DNA of 63,176 nt, counting the filler, from Choristocarpus tenellus KU-1152 (Eukaryota; Protista; Phaeophyceae), in assembly GCA_964200185.2 (NCBI GenBank). It is 6 parts of 6 records of this genome, joined end to end, with 100 filler letters (N's around TTAATTAATTAA, not from the genome) between each part and the next. Parts side by side here need not be neighbours in the genome. Positions count along the whole stretch, not along the records: positions 21,568 to 33,525 come from CAXNAD020002050.1; 5 more parts are not named here. One strand, given 5' to 3'. Under the pieces are notes generated by a model. That model saw nothing but the letters and a program-made list of their open reading frames with translations. It ran no database searches and was not told the DNA's origin. The position numbers and the translations under genes were made by a program. Positions 21,568 to 33,525 of this stretch are shown here, piece after piece. Every line of letters starts with the position of its first letter. Position 1 is the stretch's first letter.

Positions 21568-21651
21568 AAAAAAAGGTTTCTTTTCCTTTTTTTGTTCCAA
21601 GGGGACCCTCTGGTGTAGCCCCCCCCCCCCCCCCCCCAGATACTTTGGGTC
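21568..21651. mobile_element. MITE family B end fragment abutting the copia pol
   Basis: ACCCTCTGGTGTAG-poly(C)-CAGATACTTTGGGTC matches the right end of the 27013-27205 copy. Confidence 0.65.
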
Positions 21652-22922
21652 TACCCCATGATATCTCAAGGACTTTGGACAAGAGTGAGAGAATCATTAA
21701 AGTGTTGATGAAAATACACCGTACAGAGACAGTTTGTAGTTTGATGAGGGCATCTGTTATGGCTAGGCTTGACATTGCAAATACAGTTTGTGAAATTGCC
21801 AAGTATAGTAGCAATCCCAAAGTCACACATTGGCGTGCAGTGAAATGTATTTTAGCATATTTGAATACGTCTCCCAGATTGAGTTTTGGTGGGTTTGATA
21901 CTGAGTGTGAGTTGAGTGCGTATGTTGATGCTAGTTATGCTGGAGACTGGAATGGTCGTAGATCCGTGACTGGAGAAGCAATAATGTTTGCAGGAGCAAT
22001 ATCTTGGATGTCAAAGGTACAAAGAGCTGTAGCTCTGTCTTCAACGGAGAGTGAATACATAGCTCTTAGCAGTGTGGCAAAGGAATTACTTTTCTTGAGA
22101 AGCGTTCTTGAGTTTATTCAGTCACAGTTTCCTAGGCGTTGCATTGACATGTTGGAGGACAACGATGGCGCATGCAAACTAGTACGAAATGCCACAAGCT
22201 TTACTAGAACCAAGCACATTGATGTCCGACATCATTTTCTGAGGGATTTTTCGAGAAAAGGAGAGGTTCGTGTTGTTTTTGTTGGTACTGCATATCAGAG
22301 GGCAGATGTGCTGACTAAGAATTTTCCAATTCGAGTTTTTAGACAGTGTGTGAAGGTTTTGATAAACATGCAAGGTAACATGTGTGTTGTATTTTTTGTT
22401 TGTTATGCAATTGTATGTGAGTTAACATTTGTTTTCAGCAAGGGGAGGATGTCGAATAACCCAGTGTTATCCTTACGTTATCTGTGCTGATACAAAGTAC
22501 GAACGTGCATAAGAAGATAATAAATCAACATTCATTCAAATGTAGGTGATAATGGATGACTGGCGGGCAATGAATGATTCAGTGTATGTTTTACCATGAA
22601 ACTCAACTACTAGCTTTCGGCGACAAGCCTCATATACGCCAAGTTATTCAACAGAGTGGAGACGAAGACGATAACACGACTAGCCATGTTTGTATGTATT
22701 CTGCGGTTCTCTTGTTACGTTTTTAGTAGCACCAGCCTCCTTAGGCCGATGAGTGTGCAGCTATGCTTCTACGTTACGGCTAACGAAGATGCTTGCTCCA
22801 GAAAGTAGGGACGAACTCCAAGCACCTCTCACTCTATTGGTCAGGCTTGTCACTACTGCTGGAAAGAACAGCCACCGTCTCTCACACTAATATCTAAACA
22901 TTATAAACCCCCCGTCACAACA
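21652..22922 (+). mobile_element. Ty1/copia LTR retrotransposon 3' part: RT C-terminus/RNase H, PPT, 3' LTR
   Basis: ORF 21645-22490 has LSAYVDASYA..RRSVTG, ISWMSKVQ..VALSSTESEYIA, EDNDGA, RTKHIDVRHHFLR, QRADVLTK. Polypurine tract AAGGGGAGGA at 22440-22449 is followed by TGTCG; the likely LTR end is CAACA at 22922. Confidence 0.9.
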
Positions 22923-23203
22923 CCTTACACTTTTGAAGACTCTGCCACGGCGAAATCTTAGTGCTTTGTAGTATCCCAAAGAATACACTAGTTGCCAGCT
23001 CTACTGCAGCTAGCAAGACAGATGTGGTATGGACCGTAAAGAAGCACGCGTCTATCACTACTGATGCCACAACCCAAGGTTAAGGCATCACACCAGAGTT
23101 CAACGTGGCAGCACTGATGACATCAAATCAAATGTTAAATAGGTTCTAACAACTTGTTGGTTCTCTCAAGTAAGTGTGCAAAACCTTTCATCTGTTCGGA
23201 CAA

Positions 23204-23809
23204 CTAAGGGTTTGGTGATCTCAGTTGTTGTTCTTTTATAATCGCCCATTCCATGCTGTCCCTCACCTCCTCGCCGTCTCCCCTGACCTTATCCCACGTC
23301 TCGCATAAGAATTTATGCTGGTCAGAACGGTACTCGCTGTACTCCTGGAGTCCATTTTCAACATAAAAGCCCTCCCGATAGTACCTGGCCACGTCCAGAG
23401 GTTCCACGAGCTGACGATACTCGTCACCCCACCTCAGCCACTGACCTCTTTCAAAGAAGTTCTTTGATAGGGCCCCTTGTCGATACATTTGAATGGTGAT
23501 CTTCCAAAACTTCCCGAGCTTGCTCCTCGCCACCTCGATCTCCCTGCGTCTGTTGTGGCGAAAGTCATAGTAGTAGGCCTTCGGGTCTCCGTTATTCTCG
23601 ATCTGATGGGACAACTGGTACTCCTGGATCTCTACCACACACTGGGAACCACCAATGTTCTCGAAAGCCTCCCACCGATGCACCGATCGGTCAATGAGCC
23701 TGGCCTCGGCGTCGTCAACCTTGGCCTTTTGTGCCTGCCACAGTGCCAAAATAGAAACAACAAGGCCAACAGTGCCAAACGCTAATGCGATTGCTATCTC
23801 TATTTCCAT
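23204..23809 (-). CDS. Intronless 201-aa protein: N-terminal transmembrane helix plus EDS1/PAD4/SAG101 EP-domain-like region
   Basis: ATG-initiated uninterrupted ORF with hydrophobic aa 5-24. Collinear motifs: EIQEY, AYYYDFR, RSKLGKFW, WLRWGDEYRQLVEPLDVARYY, DSMEWA. Confidence 0.75.
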   Translation of the reverse strand: MEIEIAIALAFGTVGLVVSILALWQAQKAKVDDAEARLIDRSVHRWEAFENIGGSQCVVEIQEYQLSHQIENNGDPKAYYYDFRHNRRREIEVARSKLGKFWKITIQMYRQGALSKNFFERGQWLRWGDEYRQLVEPLDVARYYREGFYVENGLQEYSEYRSDQHKFLCETWDKVRGDGEEVRDSMEWAIIKEQQLRSPNP

Positions 23810-25861
23810 GTTCCTTGCCTCTTGCTATTTCTGTTTGCGTCGTACGTCAGAATTGGTACTCATTGATGGTGTGATATTGAGCAGCCTTCCCTCCTTCCTG
23901 TGCCTCCTAATCACTTGACAGAATTGCCATCTTCCACCCTTGACACCTCTACACATTCAATACTGATAAGAGATTTTGGAAGTTATAGTGTGTTTCTTTC
24001 TCCCTCCTTCAGAATGTTCTGTTTTTTCCCAACATCGGAGTTGACGTGGAGGATGGTCAGGACCAAACAAGTGGTACTTATTATTATATCTTGTTCTAGG
24101 ACTGGTAGTAATAGATTGAACTGTTAAAGGAATTTTCGCCAATAACGAGTAAGAGGTACTCATATAGCAAGAATGAGACAATTGTTCGGGGATTGTTCCA
24201 CAAAAGTACACTTTTCATGACGATTCCTGTTCGCCGAACTATCATAAGGGGAGGTATTGTCCAACCCTCTCAATCACCCTAGCAAACAATCTTACAAGTT
24301 ACCTAACAATATATTTCCCAGAACATTACTTGAACATCACAATATTCAAATGTTCCTTTCCATCACTCATGAATCATTCTAGTCGCACTATATTGTTACA
24401 AAGACATTAATTTATTACTTCATGTATACTAATAACAACGTTGAGTGCGTACCTTGAAAGTGTTTATTTCTCTGTTGTTTCCAACTTTTCCGACACTATT
24501 AAAAAAAGTTGCGTTACAAATTTGTAAAAAAAGGCAATTTTTACACCTATTTGTTAGCATCCTCAAAATGCAACTCTGGGTGCCTCTCGTTTACCTTGAC
24601 TCGCACGCAAAATTGATACTCCCCCTGTCCATAACAAAGTGACATCACAATTAAACAAAGAAGGCTCATTCTACAATTTTACAATATGGCATCTTTTTCG
24701 ACCTTTCTCGTGATCCTTACAAAGAGATCCTTGCTATCTCTCAATCGGTTTGGCTCATGTCAGTCATGAGATGCACCCTAAACAACAAATATTCAAGCGT
24801 ATAGATCCCAGGAAAGCTTTGTCGACATCAGATTATCAACACAGCAAACCTAGAAAGCACACAACATGGGCCTTCATTGCTGTAGCTACCATGGCAATCA
24901 TAACCAGAGCAAAAGAAGAGGTTAAGTTCATGGACTGCACAACAACAGGGACACCATTACTACTTCGTGAAAATAAATAATAATTCACAACATAACACGG
25001 TCCTTCCTCTACTCAGCATACTGCAAAGTCCAGAGTCACAGTCTTCAAACTTCTGATCAAGCAGAACAGAGTGACACTATCAAAGAGAGGTGTGTCGTTG
25101 AGTTTTAGGGTCCATATGACTGTATTATGGTGTAAGCGTTTTGAACAATTTGTGGAGAAAGCTTTGGGCTAACAATGTGCTAACACCTAGTACTCTGCTT
25201 CAACCACAACCTACCGAGGGGAGTTGAATTTATTCCAGGTTATATGAAGGTATCCCGAGATGGCAGACCCCAGGAGTAAGGACACTGATGTCAAAACTAG
25301 AATTCCTCAATTGCCGGCAGACTGCAATTTGGTCAGGGTTGAAGTTGAAAGCGACCCTAGCAAAGTCTATCCAGGAGGAGAGAAAATTTCAAAACACACA
25401 ACACAAGCATCCAATTTTGATCATTATTTTGATTGGTGGGGGCTAGGTGACGCACACTTTCCAGAAACATTCACTTCTTCATTGAAGTTGAGGTGGTCTC
25501 ACGAGGGTGCAATTACCCTTAATATACTTCGCCATAGCATTCATCATTCATCATCAATCGGGGGACAGATTATGTCCGCATTCATATTATTTTTTAGGTG
25601 AGGCTTAGGTTCAGAAAAAATAAAATGAAGGATGACCTGTCTGATTCATCCCAAAAATTGCGATGAACTGTGCAAAGCTCTTCCCCTATGAAAGAAGATG
25701 TAACGACTCTGGGGCCTTTTCCGTACTATGTGCCGCCATCACCATGAGACCACGGCCTTAGAACCATGACCTTATCTACCACCACCTCGTCATTTGCTGC
25801 TAGGGTGTTACTAATAACAACTCAGTCGCTATCTTGGTAGAGTAGATTGGTTGGTCAGGAC

Positions 25862-28800
25862 TCAGTCCTTTGTGCCTGCACCACCAAACACATCTTCAAT
25901 CGTCTTGGCAAGGCTGATGCCCGTACCCAAGTATCCAGACTTTTTGGTCTTGATAGAGTAGAGGAACAGTGCTACCGCCTGAAGTGAAAAGAAAAAAAAT
26001 ACATACACGCATGACACACACACACATGCAGACACAGACACGCGCGCGCACACACACAGTTGTGAGAGGAGGTTGAAGGGCACGAAATGGGAAAGTAACA
26101 GAGTGGGCGTAACGAAATGGTTTAGCTCATACAGTGACAATAATTTCCCAACCACTCCCTCACCCCCCTACCTAGGTAGAAAGTTGGCGGCAATCTCCGA
26201 TTTCCCACAAAGTCGGCACACCCTACACAAACTGTACATAAAAAATAGTAATAATGATAATAATAGTGAAAGCATCTTAGAGGGTACGAGTTTCGCCTTG
26301 TTTGACATTCGGGGCTTGGTTTCCCATGTTCTTTTATTAATGATATTTTCCTAATCGATAATATATCGGAGTAGGTAAAACGTGTACATTATGAAAGGTG
26401 TGTTCGGAACATGGATATTGACACTTCCTAACAAACACGATAGCCAAAATTACATCAAAATCGCAACATTGGATCTTGGTCCCCAAATGGACGTGGCTCT
26501 ACCCTCTAAAGATACTCTGTTATAAAATAATCAAAATTACATTTAATTTTTTTTTACTGTTTTACCGGTTGGTACTGTGTTTCTGATGAGAGGACAAATT
26601 GGGGGTATACCTTATATGTGCAACTAATTAAACTAATTTTCTCTTGCAATATTACTATAATAAATAAATTTATCATGCCTTCCATTGTATTGCTATCAGT
26701 CTTGGCCATTATTGTGGCGGATTGGATATTTTCATGTCACTTTTAAAACTCAACACCAACAATGATGCTTTGGACCAATTCATTGCATCAGATTGACCTT
26801 TCAAACTGGCCAATCACAGATACGATATATCTAAATAAATATATTTAAATACTACATACTATATACTCAGTATGAGGAACTCTCATCAAATATTTATGGA
26901 AATCACAATTGTTGTCTTGAGTAGAGTCAAAGTAGGGCATAGTAGTACATTTTAGTTTTATTATTGTTAATTAAAATATGTATGTATATATATGTATATC
27001 ACACTACACCTGGGGCTCGAAGTATCGGGGGGGGGGGGTGGGAGCTGCCCATTCAGGGGCCGTGTTTCCATGTCGTGATTTTTGTGTGATTTGGTTGCAT
27101 CTGTTGGATGGATAATGTAAGTGCACTTCTCCTGGTCAGGGCCCAAACAGACACCCTGGTGTAGACCTCCCCCCCTCCCTCCCCCACCTCCAATACTTAG
27201 AGCCCTGATACAAAAATAACATTTTCAACTAAAAAATAAAGCATTTTTTTTTCTTCAACAAACATTCCAATGCTCCTTTACATGTATAGAGTTTGAGATT
27301 CAGGAGGCATAGGCGAGAAAAGAGTCGATCATAACGCCTTCAGTCTAATAAGAAAAACTGGAACAATAATCCTCTCGACAGTAAAATCACACAAGTACAT
27401 ACATATTTTCCTTACTCGAGGAAGAGAAAACAGCAAATAATTCAGTAAAACAGAGTTGGTGACAAAATACCTCTCTCCCCCACCTTTTGTATTGTATACC
27501 TTGTGTACTGTATACTCAGTGCGTAGCTGAGGTTTAACAACCCCCCCGACTTTCTGGTAGCAACATCTCAATATATATATATGTGTCTCTTCACAAAGTC
27601 TGCAGGTGTCAAGTGCATTTCGATTGGTGCTGTCTTGTTCCCATCTTCAGTTTGTTTCTTTTCACTAAACTTTCAAAACTTTCAAAATTACTCTAACCTT
27701 TCAGTCTTTTTACCTTTCAAAATCTCTTCAAAAAAAGAAACCTTAACCTTCACAAATCGATATGCCCAACCCCCCCCCACCCTTTACTTTATTTGTACCT
27801 GGAATACATTTGCCGGGCCCGGCAACGCCTCCCAAAACTCCCCGTTGGCCACTACAGAGAAGTGTGGAGGTTGCTCTCCCATCTTCATGAGCAGGAACCT
27901 GTCCACCAATCGGAATTTTCTGGGAATGTCCATATAAAACTCGTATACCCACAAAGAATGCAACAAGACCTTTGCAATGAGATGTGGGTGTTCACATTAG
28001 CTACCTGAGCAAGGTCCTGCCTTGCACTGTATTGAGATGTCACTAATAATACAAATATTGTAGTCCACTAGTGCCAAGTGCAACAAAACAACCACATCAA
28101 AAGATCGATAATACCTAGGTCAGGTTCTTATGCTATGTATGGCGGCGTGTGTGGAAGTAGGACTACAGCAGCAGTGCACTGACCGAGCAAAAGACCATCC
28201 AAGATCAAAATAAAAACCAAATTATATGAGCATGGAAGGTGTTATGGGCGAGTTCATTGAATTAATGGGTTAGACCTTGACAACATACTACCAACCAGGC
28301 TTGTTTGATATCTCACCTGTTTACATCATTATTGTTATGTGGGAAAATTCTTATCGTTTTCTTACAACAAAATAAAATGGTTGATACTAATAAGAAGAAG
28401 AAAAAAGCAATGAAAACACTAATCTGAAAACCGTATTGGTTGTACATGTTAAAAATAAATAAATAGCACTAATAAGCACGCCACTATCACTACTAATACT
28501 ACCATAGCACTACTCCTGTTGTAGAAGCAATCATTATAAAAACAGCAATCAACCCCCAACCCTAACCCCCCATATCTAGAGTCATTATAATAAGAAAAAT
28601 CATAAGAATAATAGGGGTTAGGGTTAGGGTATTGGGGGGATGGGGCAAGTCACTGACCAAGCTGCAACCTTAATAACCCTTTCCTGAGAGGAACATTGGT
28701 TATTGAAGCAGATTCTACTATGGCACATACATGCGTATATATACATACATTTGAGACACACATTCCACTCCTCTACACTCTACATGGAACACAGTCCAAC

Positions 28801-31800
28801 AAAGACAAGCAAAAAAAACAAACATCTTGTTGTGTCGATATAAAACACCAATCAATCACCCTTTTCCTACCTAACTACAACCAACACAATCTGACACCCT
28901 ATCTGTTCCAAACCCGACAAGAAGGAATGCGACATTCTATCACCAAGAAGGCATTTTCAAACAAGCAAGAAAGACTTCATCTCGACAGAACACAAAGACG
29001 TACGTCATTATTCCCACACATACTGTTACATACTGTTCACACACACAGGCATCAAACATCAAACACATGAAGGCAATCAATCACACAAGGACCAAACGGA
29101 ATGGGTGTATGAAAAAATACCTTCTGTTGCTAGTACTGCAATGAACCTACAAATTAACATAACTATACTTAGGATTAGGGTTAGGGCTAGGGCGGATTGA
29201 AAACAAAATAAAACAAAAAGGTTGCCACTACAAAGTAACCCCTTTGAGACTTGAGTAGGTGAGAGGGGTGTCCAGGTCTGTCATGCAGAGGAGAGGCCGT
29301 TTGGCACCTAAAGCCAGTTTTTCAATCTTTTGCAATTCAACCACATTGTCGTTTCAAAATGTTAATTTTCTCATTTTTGTTTGGGGCAGGGGGGGGACGT
29401 ACGCCGTAAGCCATAGAGCTAGACAAAATAAGTTATAGGACAAAACAGTGGCACACGTTACACCTCCAGAGGACAAATAAAATAAAATATATACATTAAA
29501 CTTAAAGAAAAAAAGAAATACGCTCAAATATCACCTCGCCATTTTTAATAAAAAGAATAAATATACTCCCCCCCCCCACATCAAACTAAACCTTGACCCT
29601 ACCTACATATTGACACTACTAAAGCTCTCGAACAGTGCATAACAAGATGTTCCCAAAAGATTGAAGGCGGCGGTACCTTCAATATCAATACCATGAGCAC
29701 AGTCCATACACTCTCACTAACAACCCAACTCTCTAACCCTCACCTCCCCCTGAGGTTTTCCTCGCCCCTGACAGGTGGTGTCTCCATGAAGTGTGCCCTT
29801 GAGAACGGTCTATCCTCTGGGTATTCCTTGGAGAGGAGGTCATCGCTGCTGCAGACATAGACGTGCATTACCACGGCAGCATCTGTCGCCAGCTGGGGAC
29901 CCCAGTCCCTCCCACCATACCTGAAATAATATATTAGGTTTAGGGTTAACAGGATCCGTTGGAGGTTTAAGGTTAGGGTTACCTGAAACAACAACAAAAT
30001 ATTATTAATTGAAAAAAGGCATCCAATGAGAGGTCTTGGATGAACAAACCATTCATCCATTGTACATAGTATATTTATTTGTCTCAAGTAACCCTAACCC
30101 CAATCTAAAATATAAAAAACCAAGAAGCCCTTGCCTCAACTCTGCCTTTCATCTCCAACCCTAACCCTAACCCTAACTTGAATCTATATCCCTAACTTTA
30201 TCGCCTGTAGGTACACACTACTAATGCATAATACACATCAAAGCGCAATCCTAATCCTAGCCCTAGCCCTAACCCTAACTTACACTCTGAGCTCGCAAAA
30301 ATAAACAATAAACATTTTTCTTCCTTAGTAATACACACACACAACGTTTTTCAATTATATAGTAATATATACACACAACGTTTTCAATTATATAAAGTCT
30401 CAACATAAAAAAAACTCCGCCCCCCCCAACCTCCAAAAAAAGACTGCTTAATTTGAATAATAACTCGTTAGTTACTCGTTAGATACTCGTTAGTTACTCG
30501 TTAGTTACTCGTTAGTTACTCGTTAGATACTCGTTAGTTACTCGTTAGATACTCGTTAGATACTCGTTAGATACTCGTTAGTTACTCGTTAGATACTCGT
30601 TAGTTACTCGTTAGATACTCGTTAGATACTCGTTAGTTACTCGTTAGTTACTCGTTAGTTACTCGTTAGATACTCGTTAGTTACTCGTTAGTTACTCTCT
30701 GCTTTACTCGAAGAGCAACTAACACAGCTTTTGAAGGACTTGGACAGAGATAGGCCATTTGTGAAAATTTCTAATAACAGTGCCATACATACTGCTTTAA
30801 TTCATTTATATTGCTTTGTGTCTCCAGTTCACAGGCAGTAAGTCCATCCCAATAAATTCACCTAAACCTTTACGCATTTTTTTAACCCTGTGAAACAACC
30901 CGGAGGGACAAAGGTACTCTATGAGTTAGGGTTAGGGTGTGAGTAATAATAATAATAATAATAATAAAACAGATGAAAATACTCTAAATAAATAATTATA
31001 TATTTTTTCTTATGCATTGTGCAACATAATTCTACCCTAAACCTAACCCTAACCAACAAGGTAGCCGATTTCAGTTTCAAACAATATTGAACTCGTTCTA
31101 CGTCAACAAAATGCCTTTGTGATATTACAATCATACATCATACCTCATACATCATACTGAGGATAACATAAGGCACTAGTCATTATAGTAATCTACCTCC
31201 CTCATCAGTGCACTACTAGACTCTCAGTCTTACCTGCTCCAGGGTAACAGTGTAATTCTACTTATTAATATTATTATATTAATATTATTTTCACCATTAT
31301 TATTATTCTTAAGGTGACACACCTGAAACATACAGATCCCCATAAATGTACAGAAAATAATTTCTCTGTATATTACATGTCCATTACAAAGAGGTGACCT
31401 TCACTACTTCATGTGCCAAGTGACACAATGCCTTCACTTGATATCATTTTATTTTATTCAGTCTCTATTCTACAGGACATCTTCAATGATTTTTTGTTTT
31501 TCTGGGGGGGGGGGGGGAGAAGATTCTATTCCACCCGTAAAAAAATAAGGTCTACTGCACAGGAATTAAACAAAATATGTCAAAGTGACTGAAAGAGGTA
31601 TCTATACCTCTCAGATGGTATCAATAATCTAATAGTGTGACTCTAGAGAAAGAGAGATGGATAGATAGAGAGAGAAAAAAAACTGATCAACAAACCTTCC
31701 ACCCTTGTCCCAAATAAAAGTACTCAGAAAGTCATCTTCAGCCAACGTGCGTAGCCTCTGAAGGACATAGCCGGCTCCAGAGCCAACTCCGGTAGCACCA

Positions 31801-31877
31801 ACGCCAACGCCAACATGCAAAGCCTTTTCTAGGTACTGGCATGTTTCCATAGCAACATTGCAGTCAGTGGGCGGTAT
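25862..31877 (-). CDS. TMEM209: TMEM209 (CytochromB561_N family nuclear-envelope protein), 3' four exons (31877-31696, 29920-29744, 27898-27799, 25978-25862)
   Basis: Phase-consistent splicing gives YVLQRLRTLAEDDFLSTFIWDKGGRYGGRDWGPQLATDAAVVMHVY...PPHF...NVFQAVALFLYSIKTKKSGYLG, matching the conserved TMEM209 C-terminus. Confidence 0.85.
26264..26517 (-). mobile_element. MITE family A, full copy in reverse orientation
   Basis: Reverse complement is collinear with 6485-6743; ends AGTGAAAGCATCTTAGAGGGTA / TACCCTCTAAAGATACT. Confidence 0.8.
27013..27205 (+). mobile_element. MITE family B, full copy
   Basis: Imperfect TIRs GGGCTCGAAGTATCGG+poly(G) / poly(C)+CCAATACTTAGAGCCC; the internal part is the reverse complement of 33340-33500. 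Confidence 0.75.
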
Positions 31878-33001
31878 CTTGTTGGTAAAGTTCTTAGGGT
31901 TAGGGTTAGGGTCAGGGTTAGGGTTAGGGCTGAAATTACTTTCTCGAAAAGGTCAAGAAAAGGTACTAATGTACATGCATGCTTGAAGAACTATGTGATC
32001 AACTGACTACTCCCCACTTTGTTGGGGGTGAGAGGAGTTTGGGATAATGAGCCATAGTTTCAAGCACTACAGAGCACTCTTGTGGTTCAGCGGCTAGATG
32101 GAGGATAGAGGGGGAGGAGGGATGGCATTCTGTAATTACATTTTTTGATTATTTTCATTGCTACTTCAACATCTTCAAATGTATCTTAAAAAATGGATAG
32201 GGTTAGGGTTAGTTACGCCGTCTCATACACAAAATATATGTAACAAATTTGAAGATGTTGATAATTATTATCATTCTAAGCAAAAAAAATGTAACAAGTT
32301 TTTGAATCCCTAAGCCCATAATATCCTGACAAAAAACTTGAAACACCTAAATCGCCACCAATCAGGAAGAGCTTATGTGGACATTTCCCAGAGCTACAAG
32401 AAATGTGAGCTGTATCTATTTTTAACCAATTACAACACATAAAAAGTCCAACCTGAGAGAACCACTATTCAAAAAATTATTTCAGTGTTCTCTAATAAAA
32501 AGAAAAATACTGCAGTTGTCAGCATATTAACACCGCCTGGACCACTAACCCTAACCCTAACCCTAAGCACCCTCACAATCAATAAAAATTCTTTCACCTG
32601 TCCATGGGTTGTAAGTGTGTCCAGGTTTTATTAGAGGATCAACCAAAATTAATGAATAAATTGTTAATTTCAGACATCAAGTAAGAGTCAACCAGGGGAG
32701 GGGGGGGGCAAATCAATCAATAAAAAAAAACCCATGAATATATATATATAACAATGTTTACACCATCAACATCTTGTTGTGACTCTGAGCAGCAGGAAGT
32801 GAAGTGTGCGAAGAAGTGGGCAGGCGTTTCTTTCTATAGCATACACAAAGGCAACAATAACCCTAACCCTAACCCTAAACATGATTCGGGTGGAAACTGT
32901 GCAATAATAATAATAATAGTAATAGATTGAGGTCAACGAATTGTCAGAGAAATCATCTCCAGAGATATATGTCCAGGAAAGGGCTTAGGGTTAGGGTTAG
33001 G
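28555..33001. repeat. Cluster of short interstitial telomere-like (TTAGGG/CCCTAA)n tracts
   Basis: About 14 short tracts in both orientations, e.g. ~28615, 29170, 29935-29980, 30160, 30260, 30925, 31035, 31895-31930, 32200, 32550, 32860, 32985. Confidence 0.85.
30463..30697. repeat. 11-bp minisatellite ACTCGTTAG[T/A]T x21
   Basis: Counted directly; units differ only at one position. Confidence 0.95.
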
Positions 33002-33324
33002 AAGTTTTTTTTTTAATGATTTGGAGGGCAAGGGCATATGACTAAGGGTATGTGAAGCAGTCAGTGACTTATGATGGTCTACTCTTGGGAGGTTAACATA
33101 TGTTGAGATATCTTATGACATGTTAAGGTATGTCATGACATTAACTCCCCTCTGCTGCTTCAAGGTAAAAAAATAAAATTAGTAAGTACTATAATAATAA
33201 TAATATTACTAGCTGTTATTAGTGGTGGTAAAAGTAATAACAATAGCAATGGCATTAATCGCGATAGTGATGGACTGGCTGATGCAGAACGGGCAGTTGG
33301 ATCTCAACATTTTTTAATTTACAA

Positions 33325-33510
33325 GTCTCAAAGCGTCTGGGGGGTGGGGGTGGGGGGGATCTACGCCAGGGTGCCCATTCTGGCGCTGACCAGAAAAAAG
33401 TGTGCTTACATTATCCATCTGACGCATGCAACCAAATCACACAATAATAGCAACATGGAAAAATAGGCCCCGAATGGACAGTCGTCACCCCCCCCCCCCC
33501 CCCAAACATT
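33325..33510 (-). mobile_element. MITE family B, diverged copy in reverse orientation
   Basis: e.g. GCTTACATTATCCATCTGACGCATGCAACCAAATCACACAA versus TTGTGTGATTTGGTTGCATCTGTTGGATGGATAATGTAAGT at ~27082-27122; G-run and C-run ends. Confidence 0.75.
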
Positions 33511-33525
33511 AATCCACCACCTCTT

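Follow-up and report, generated by a model that had tools for sequence, protein, structure and literature searches.

The closest described relatives of the protein reported here are EDS1, PAD4 and SAG101 of plants (PDB 7XEY, 8ZF0 and 4NFU), which share a helical EP domain. A recent study found robust EP homology only in seed plants, mentioned short EP-like sequences in green algae and stated two open questions: TIR signalling in lineages without EDS1, and the origin of the EP domain (10.64898/2026.05.20.726525). For brown algae, the accessible part of Kim et al. 2025 (PMC12089773) defines 'EDS1' genes by InterPro IPR044214 and IPR041266 and gives counts of genes carrying these EDS1/EP signatures: 13–19 for Sargassum, 3 for Saccharina, 1 for Undaria and 0 for Ectocarpales. 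It treats them as salicylic-acid regulators and places GFP fusions of Sargassum EP proteins at endomembrane vesicles; within that part, a missing lipase, a membrane anchor, a green-algal class and a TIR link go unmentioned.

Here we describe mini-EP, a short protein encoded in a window of 63,176 nt (the whole stretch of DNA analysed, filler included) from the assembly of Choristocarpus tenellus KU-1152 (GCA_964200185.2), on the piece derived from CAXNAD020002050.1. Like EDS1, PAD4 and SAG101, it has the collinear motifs, the EPLD(I/V)A helix and, in its predicted structure, the EP helical bundle, and it keeps the equivalents of EDS1 D469, Y473 and R425. Unlike them, it has no lipase, and hence no LLIF dimer interface, and no C-terminal EP half; it carries a predicted N-terminal membrane anchor, is encoded by a single exon, has the PAD4-side and several EDS1-side pocket contacts replaced and falls in a separate clade. 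The original prediction had placed this EP domain far outside its known range, a claim that yields to the two studies above: brown-algal EP genes had already been counted, as the accessible part of PMC12089773 shows, and short green-algal sequences had been mentioned. The presence of EP genes in brown algae is therefore published; in the literature searched, which was thin in subscription papers, we found no account of the mini-EP architecture, of a class uniting brown-algal and green-algal members or of EP–TIR fusions.

The gene and its probable transcript

The encoded protein consists of a transmembrane anchor, a linker helix and the N-terminal half of an EP domain (Table 1). An in-frame stop lies six codons 5′ of the ATG. 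In run X3 a single contig covers the coding sequence together with about 125 nt before the ATG and about 600 nt downstream; its depth is 619, against about 1–17 in the unique bins that belong to neither of the two high-depth contigs. Such a contrast is expected of an RNA run, so the contig is probably an unspliced transcript, with X3 as RNA and the strand both presumed. Runs X1 and X2 show 0 differences across the gene and a single-copy depth equal to that of its unique flanks. Compared with homologous coding sequences, synonymous sites are saturated (pS 0.86–0.99) at a dN of 0.40–0.44, and the gene is under purifying selection. It is intronless within an intron-rich genome and lies 714 bp from a Copia remnant. 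Mini-EP is a real host gene. The nearest named relative, from Ascophyllum nodosum, and the repeat-rich eukaryotic surroundings point to a brown alga or a close sister group, and the genome is very probably brown-algal.

Table 1. Features of the mini-EP locus and its surroundings (window coordinates)
Feature	Position	Strand	Basis or remark
Mini-EP gene CDS, single exon, 201 aa	23204..23809	minus	ORF call, Pfam
Pfam EDS1_EP match, aa 76–164, profile positions 14–108 of 211	23318..23584	minus	Pfam
Hydrophobic helix aa 5–23, predicted signal anchor	23741..23797	minus	hydropathy
Central helix aa 124–147 with EPLDVA hallmark	23369..23440	minus	alignment
EPLDVA motif	23404–23387	minus	
R95, EDS1 R425 equivalent (phosphate contact)	23525..23527	minus	alignment; invariant in brown family
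Probable unspliced transcript	22601..23934	minus, strand inferred	1334-nt contig, run X3
Last exon of upstream spliced gene	25110–25981	minus	AG acceptor at 25981; X3 depth 200
Further candidate exons of that gene	near 27799–27945, 29746–29919, 31722–31898, 32011–32091		
Degenerate Copia-type retrotransposon end	21645–22490	plus	RT/RNase H-like; present in many copies; matches the Copia element of L003/L004 (tblastn E 1e-11)
Short interspersed repeats	26248–26637, 27028–27222		>ten-thousand-fold single-copy depth, run X1
Related C-rich repeat copy	21580–21637		
Tandem array	30467–30698		12-nt unit, about 19 copies

An EP domain without a lipase

The sole Pfam match of the protein is EDS1_EP (PF18117), at 57.9 bits (E 1.4e-15) against a gathering threshold of 23.1 bits. 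In the PDB, phmmer finds EDS1 (2.7e-9), PAD4 (4.4e-7) and SAG101 (2.1e-5), and the family/class profile matches EDS1 at 1e-25. The predicted structure contains the EP helical bundle, with a match spanning about residues 33–201. All eight motifs that the original prediction had picked out, EPLDVA among them, lie at the residues it gave, and these scores bear out its argument that their collinearity is not due to chance. A botulinum-like protein also appeared in the phmmer search (E 0.017–0.075), was lost with a profile search and was set aside as a chance match.

The EDS1_EP profile is covered in part, and the full domain length is not reached. Its EP domain breaks off about 60–100 residues before the point at which a plant EP domain would end. 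The EPLD motif is followed by 66 residues, whereas most full-length plant proteins have about 125–165 there; the EP domain of mini-EP thus lacks its C-terminal half. Lipase queries found no match in the window piece or in four Ascophyllum-type loci (L001–L004); together with the upstream in-frame stop and the unspliced transcript-like contig, this shows that mini-EP lacks the lipase-like domain with its LLIF dimer helix. It is an EP-domain protein but not a member of the EDS1 family.

At the other end, the hydrophobic helix has a mean hydropathy of 2.58, an acidic N-terminal flank (net charge −2) and lysines after it. By the positive-inside rule, this pattern predicts an N-out/C-in anchor with the EP domain on the cytosolic side, and all 9 full-length brown homologues (P0001–P0009) have it. 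Neither this helix nor the shortened EP domain was among the features that the original prediction listed as seen. The vesicle localisation of the Sargassum fusions, as given in the accessible part of PMC12089773, fits such an anchor; that those constructs belong to the same architecture we infer from the InterPro filter used there, not from their sequences.

A class that spans brown and green algae

The 12 nearest proteins, from a search covering lengths of 0.55–1.75 times the query, are 48–56% identical and are all stand-alone EP proteins of 115–250 aa. The nearest named relative, CAN0350155.1 of Ascophyllum nodosum, belongs to one of the nearest clusters, and other near relatives lie on 560–630 kb transposon-rich eukaryotic contigs. 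A further 51 metagenome loci are 28–38% identical over long matches, and a profile search of the 90% database added one protein. An exhaustive search recovered lipase-less short EPs from Chlorokybus atmophyticus (P0027, P0034, P0083), Elliptochloris bilobata (P0045), Myrmecia bisecta (P0114) and metagenomic contigs; the green-algal short EP-like sequences mentioned previously (10.64898/2026.05.20.726525) are of this same class.

Most complete short EPs have an N-terminal TM helix 110–150 residues ahead of the EPLD motif. We define the algal TM-mini-EP class by this helix and spacing, the lack of a lipase and a short C terminus, all of which mini-EP displays; Chlorokybus P0027 and P0034 and the eukaryotic P0023, P0029, P0030 and P0061 also have the TM-EP architecture. 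Against the seed-plant limit proposed for robust EP homology, 24 of 24 aligned class members match EDS1_EP (best E 1.2e-20). The Sargassum and Laminariales 'EDS1' genes, which resemble mini-EP in coming from brown algae, carrying InterPro EDS1/EP signatures, being multi-copy and lying near transposons, are very probably the same family, a grouping made from their description in the accessible part of PMC12089773 and not from their sequences.

In a tree that leaves out long-branch or fragmentary sequences (P0029, P0078, the second EP of P0083, P0089, P0094, P0060, P0096, P0100, P0010, P0011) as well as most plant rows, the brown-type sequences form a clade (100/98) separate from the lipase-EP land-plant clade (100/98), which excludes mini-EP. 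A sister pairing of the brown and plant clades is not rejected (p-AU 0.36), and the trees point to no particular donor. Profile, phmmer and fold matches, the Ascophyllum nodosum relative and the tree together uphold the original prediction of an EP-domain homologue in a non-plant genome.

The family is multi-copy and includes truncated paralogues, a state common in immune families. Two Ascophyllum-type paralogues (L001:10001-10600 and L002:10001-10600) differ by dN 0.13 and dS 0.11, a ratio of 1.17, and several copies are truncated or frameshifted (P0010, P0012, P0022), a picture of rapid birth-and-death turnover.

Three further loci were also noted. L070:2-2598 (P0026; SRR36092047, SRR22405887; GC 44%) encodes a lipase and a full-length EP domain and is placed in the tree as the sister of every EDS1, PAD4 and SAG101 sequence sampled, the rest grouping at 97/95; should it come from a non-seed plant, the gene would represent the EDS1 family before its duplication. 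The divergent short EPs of L012:758-1294 (P0089) and L066:2839-3792 (P0078) lie on contigs that are compact, rich in AT (GC 37% and 42%) and closely packed with ORFs, and that could be protist, giant-virus or bacterial DNA.

EP–TIR fusions in green-algal relatives

EP and TIR domains are linked in green-algal relatives of mini-EP. Chlorokybus P0083 (Chrsp5S06985) has a TM-EP-TIR arrangement plus a second EP, which may be a merged neighbouring gene; in its predicted fold the EP and TIR parts are good, and the second EP has a pLDDT below 50, with no EP–EP packing readable. Myrmecia bisecta P0114 (WJX72_007249) is an EP-TIR protein, and L013/L014 have EP followed by TIR exons (L013:7622-9034). 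The EP domains of these three fusions form one subclade (99/84). L067 (8249-10232) carries a TIR_2 ORF and an EP ORF in divergent orientation, about 590 bp apart; this EP falls outside the fusion subclade, and the locus is likely a second link. Because the fusions share a subclade, there are at most two independent EP–TIR links, neither of them in the brown clade. As read from alignments, the TIR domains of the fusions and of L067 keep Glu at the catalytic position.

Searched with TIR profiles, the window piece and the surroundings of the four Ascophyllum-type loci, out to 10 kb, gave no match, nor did the 51 metagenome loci. With no TIR near mini-EP or the Ascophyllum-type genes, mini-EP is linked to TIR domains by kinship alone. 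The fusions strengthen the relevance to the origin of the EP domain that the original prediction had claimed.

A partly kept, partly remodelled candidate pocket

Contacts of the plant ligand pocket were taken from Huang et al. (10.1101/2022.04.01.486681) and mapped by profile alignments. On the EDS1 side, R425, D469 and Y473 are identical in mini-EP (R95, D139, Y143); N472 becomes R142 (Asn in most non-brown class members), H476 becomes Glu, K478 Phe and R493 Gln, and T482 is not alignable. On the PAD4 side, R314, K379, K380, Y383 and F387 are replaced by Val, Gly, Gln, Arg and Glu, the last two being R126 and E130; other brown proteins have Arg at 130. The analogy with the plant pocket drawn in the original prediction is thus partly borne out, with 3 of 8 EDS1-side and 0 of 5 PAD4-side contacts identical. 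Within the central helix, 16 of 24 columns are invariant across 13 brown-type sequences, and in the brown family Arg is invariant, or nearly so, at positions 126, 130 (Glu here) and 142 of the ligand-facing helix. Equivalents of EDS1 D469, Y473 and R425 are widely conserved across the short-EP class.

These alignments suggest that the part reading the phosphoribosyl group is partly kept and that the remainder is remodelled, yet basic and invariant in the brown family. Such a pattern is consistent with a ligand that is related but not the same, and just as consistent with a structural role; the kept residues sit in the hallmark motif and may themselves be structural. Since several contacts differ, any ligand would probably be other than pRib-AMP/ADP itself.

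A possible membrane-anchored receptor

We propose, with a probability of roughly 45%, that mini-EP is a membrane-anchored receptor for a TIR-type, NAD+-derived nucleotide signal, with a stress, defence or cell-death output. The N-out/C-in helix would hold the EP half-domain at the cytosolic face of the membrane, two or more EP domains would build a cleft equivalent to the EDS1–PAD4 cleft of plants, and a TIR-type nucleotide would bind in it; binding would then drive oligomerisation or partner recruitment and so the output. Topology, self-association, ligand binding, a brown-algal TIR partner and the output are each steps that we infer. The EP–TIR links of relatives, the kept D469, Y473 and R425 equivalents, the Arg residues of the brown family, the vesicle localisation and desiccation-time transcription of Sargassum EP genes and the multi-copy state with truncated paralogues count in favour of a receptor. 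The lack of a TIR near brown-algal loci, the replaced contacts and the absence of the lipase that dimerises EDS1 count against it, as does the fact that the ADR1 and NRG1 helpers are plant proteins. STING of animals, the Thoeris TM-Macro ThsA and the CBASS TM-SAVED effectors are membrane-anchored second-messenger receptors; the resemblance to mini-EP would be one of logic, a TM anchor and a cytosolic nucleotide-sensing domain downstream of a signal-making enzyme. We found no sequence or fold relationship to them, and mini-EP has one helix as opposed to two to four.

More tentatively, TM-mini-EP proteins may be ancestral stand-alone algal receptors of TIR signals, TM-anchored homo-oligomers coupled to TIR long before EP and lipase were fused into EDS1 in land plants. 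They would have reached brown algae by ancient transfer or deep survival, with a possible link to prokaryotic DUF4760. If so, lineages that lack EDS1 would have in TM-mini-EP a candidate for their missing TIR receptor. The green-algal EP–TIR fusions suggest that the plant pathway may have grown out of a receptor that was older and simpler. An anchored EP protein of 200 residues in a single chain, together with natural fusions that join enzyme and putative receptor in one protein, makes both stated questions directly testable and provides a candidate signalling part for seaweed immunity.

Alternative readings

Mini-EP could instead be a membrane-tethered helical adaptor that works purely through contacts with other proteins, such as NB-ARC-TPR or trafficking proteins, its nucleotide binding lost or never present. 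The pocket contacts, of which 3 of 8 on the EDS1 side and none on the PAD4 side are identical, favour this reading, as do the brown loci without a TIR neighbour and the finding that most NB proteins of brown algae are of the NB-TPR type and bear a transmembrane signature (PMC7145615). We consider it somewhat unlikely, given that the ligand-facing helix is invariant and Arg-rich at its two ends in the brown family and that relatives are tied to TIR.

It is improbable that mini-EP is a functional equivalent of EDS1 that promotes the build-up of salicylic acid during desiccation, the role proposed for Sargassum by Kim et al. 2025 (PMC12089773). In the accessible part of their paper, desiccation of Sargassum is accompanied by transcription of EP genes and a rise in salicylic acid; that evidence is correlative, and brown algae lack SARD1 and CBP60g according to the same part. 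Mini-EP itself has no lipase, has half of the EP domain and appears membrane-anchored, findings that correct the published reading of brown-algal 'EDS1' proteins as full salicylic-acid regulators.

The lack of introns, the nearby Copia remnant and the ratio of 1.17 between the two Ascophyllum-type paralogues would be explained if mini-EP were a passenger of little use to its host, gained by horizontal transfer or retroposition and carried about by transposons. Such a passenger would also suit the overlap of most Sargassum copies with transposon annotations and the patchy distribution, with absence from Ectocarpales, described in the accessible part of PMC12089773. However, the signal of purifying selection, with saturated synonymous sites at a dN of 0.40–0.44, largely refutes it for this copy, and the single-copy depth, the transcript-like contig and, on the same partial source, the occurrence of the family in both Fucales and Laminariales make it decidedly improbable.

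DUF4760 (PF15956), a prokaryotic family that combines an N-terminal TM helix with a helical domain of similar size, offers a further reading, in which mini-EP belongs to DUF4760 and EP descends from it or merely resembles it. An Atlas feature search using a language model returns DUF4760 clusters at 0.93–0.94 with 181–183 shared features, and Chlorokybus P0027 gives a weak match below the cut-off (E 0.03–0.04). Against this, every one of the 24 class members matches EDS1_EP and one matches DUF4760. No prokaryotic or viral relative emerged from pattern scans of 185,579 genomes and viral contigs, which require conserved words that remote kin may not have, from tblastn of phages and plasmids, from PHROGs, PADLOC and NCBIfam or from fold searches in BFVD and the Atlas. 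DUF4760 fails to replace the EP identity, mini-EP having no DUF4760 match in Pfam and the Atlas fold search no DUF4760 row, and we judge the reading as a whole highly improbable; as a remote ancestor of EP it is a lead, from language-model features and one sub-threshold Pfam match.

Land-plant or green-algal contamination, which the classical description of EP from seed plants might suggest, has a negligible chance, and for land plants it is refuted by the 48–56% identity to nearest kin that include Ascophyllum nodosum, by the separate brown and plant clades and by a gene depth equal to that of unique flanks, with the neighbouring repeats at high copy in the same run. The original prediction had named a missing profile or fold match, a DUF4760-like family and land-plant contamination as ways in which it might be wrong, and none of these was found.

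Surroundings of the gene

A spliced gene lies upstream on the same strand (Table 1); searched one by one, its five candidate exons matched no family. The piece at 21568–33525 has a GC content of 40.5%, against 46–51% in the Ascophyllum-type loci, and carries 2.9 telomere-like TTAGGG/CCCTAA hexamers per kb, against 0.2–0.5 in those loci.
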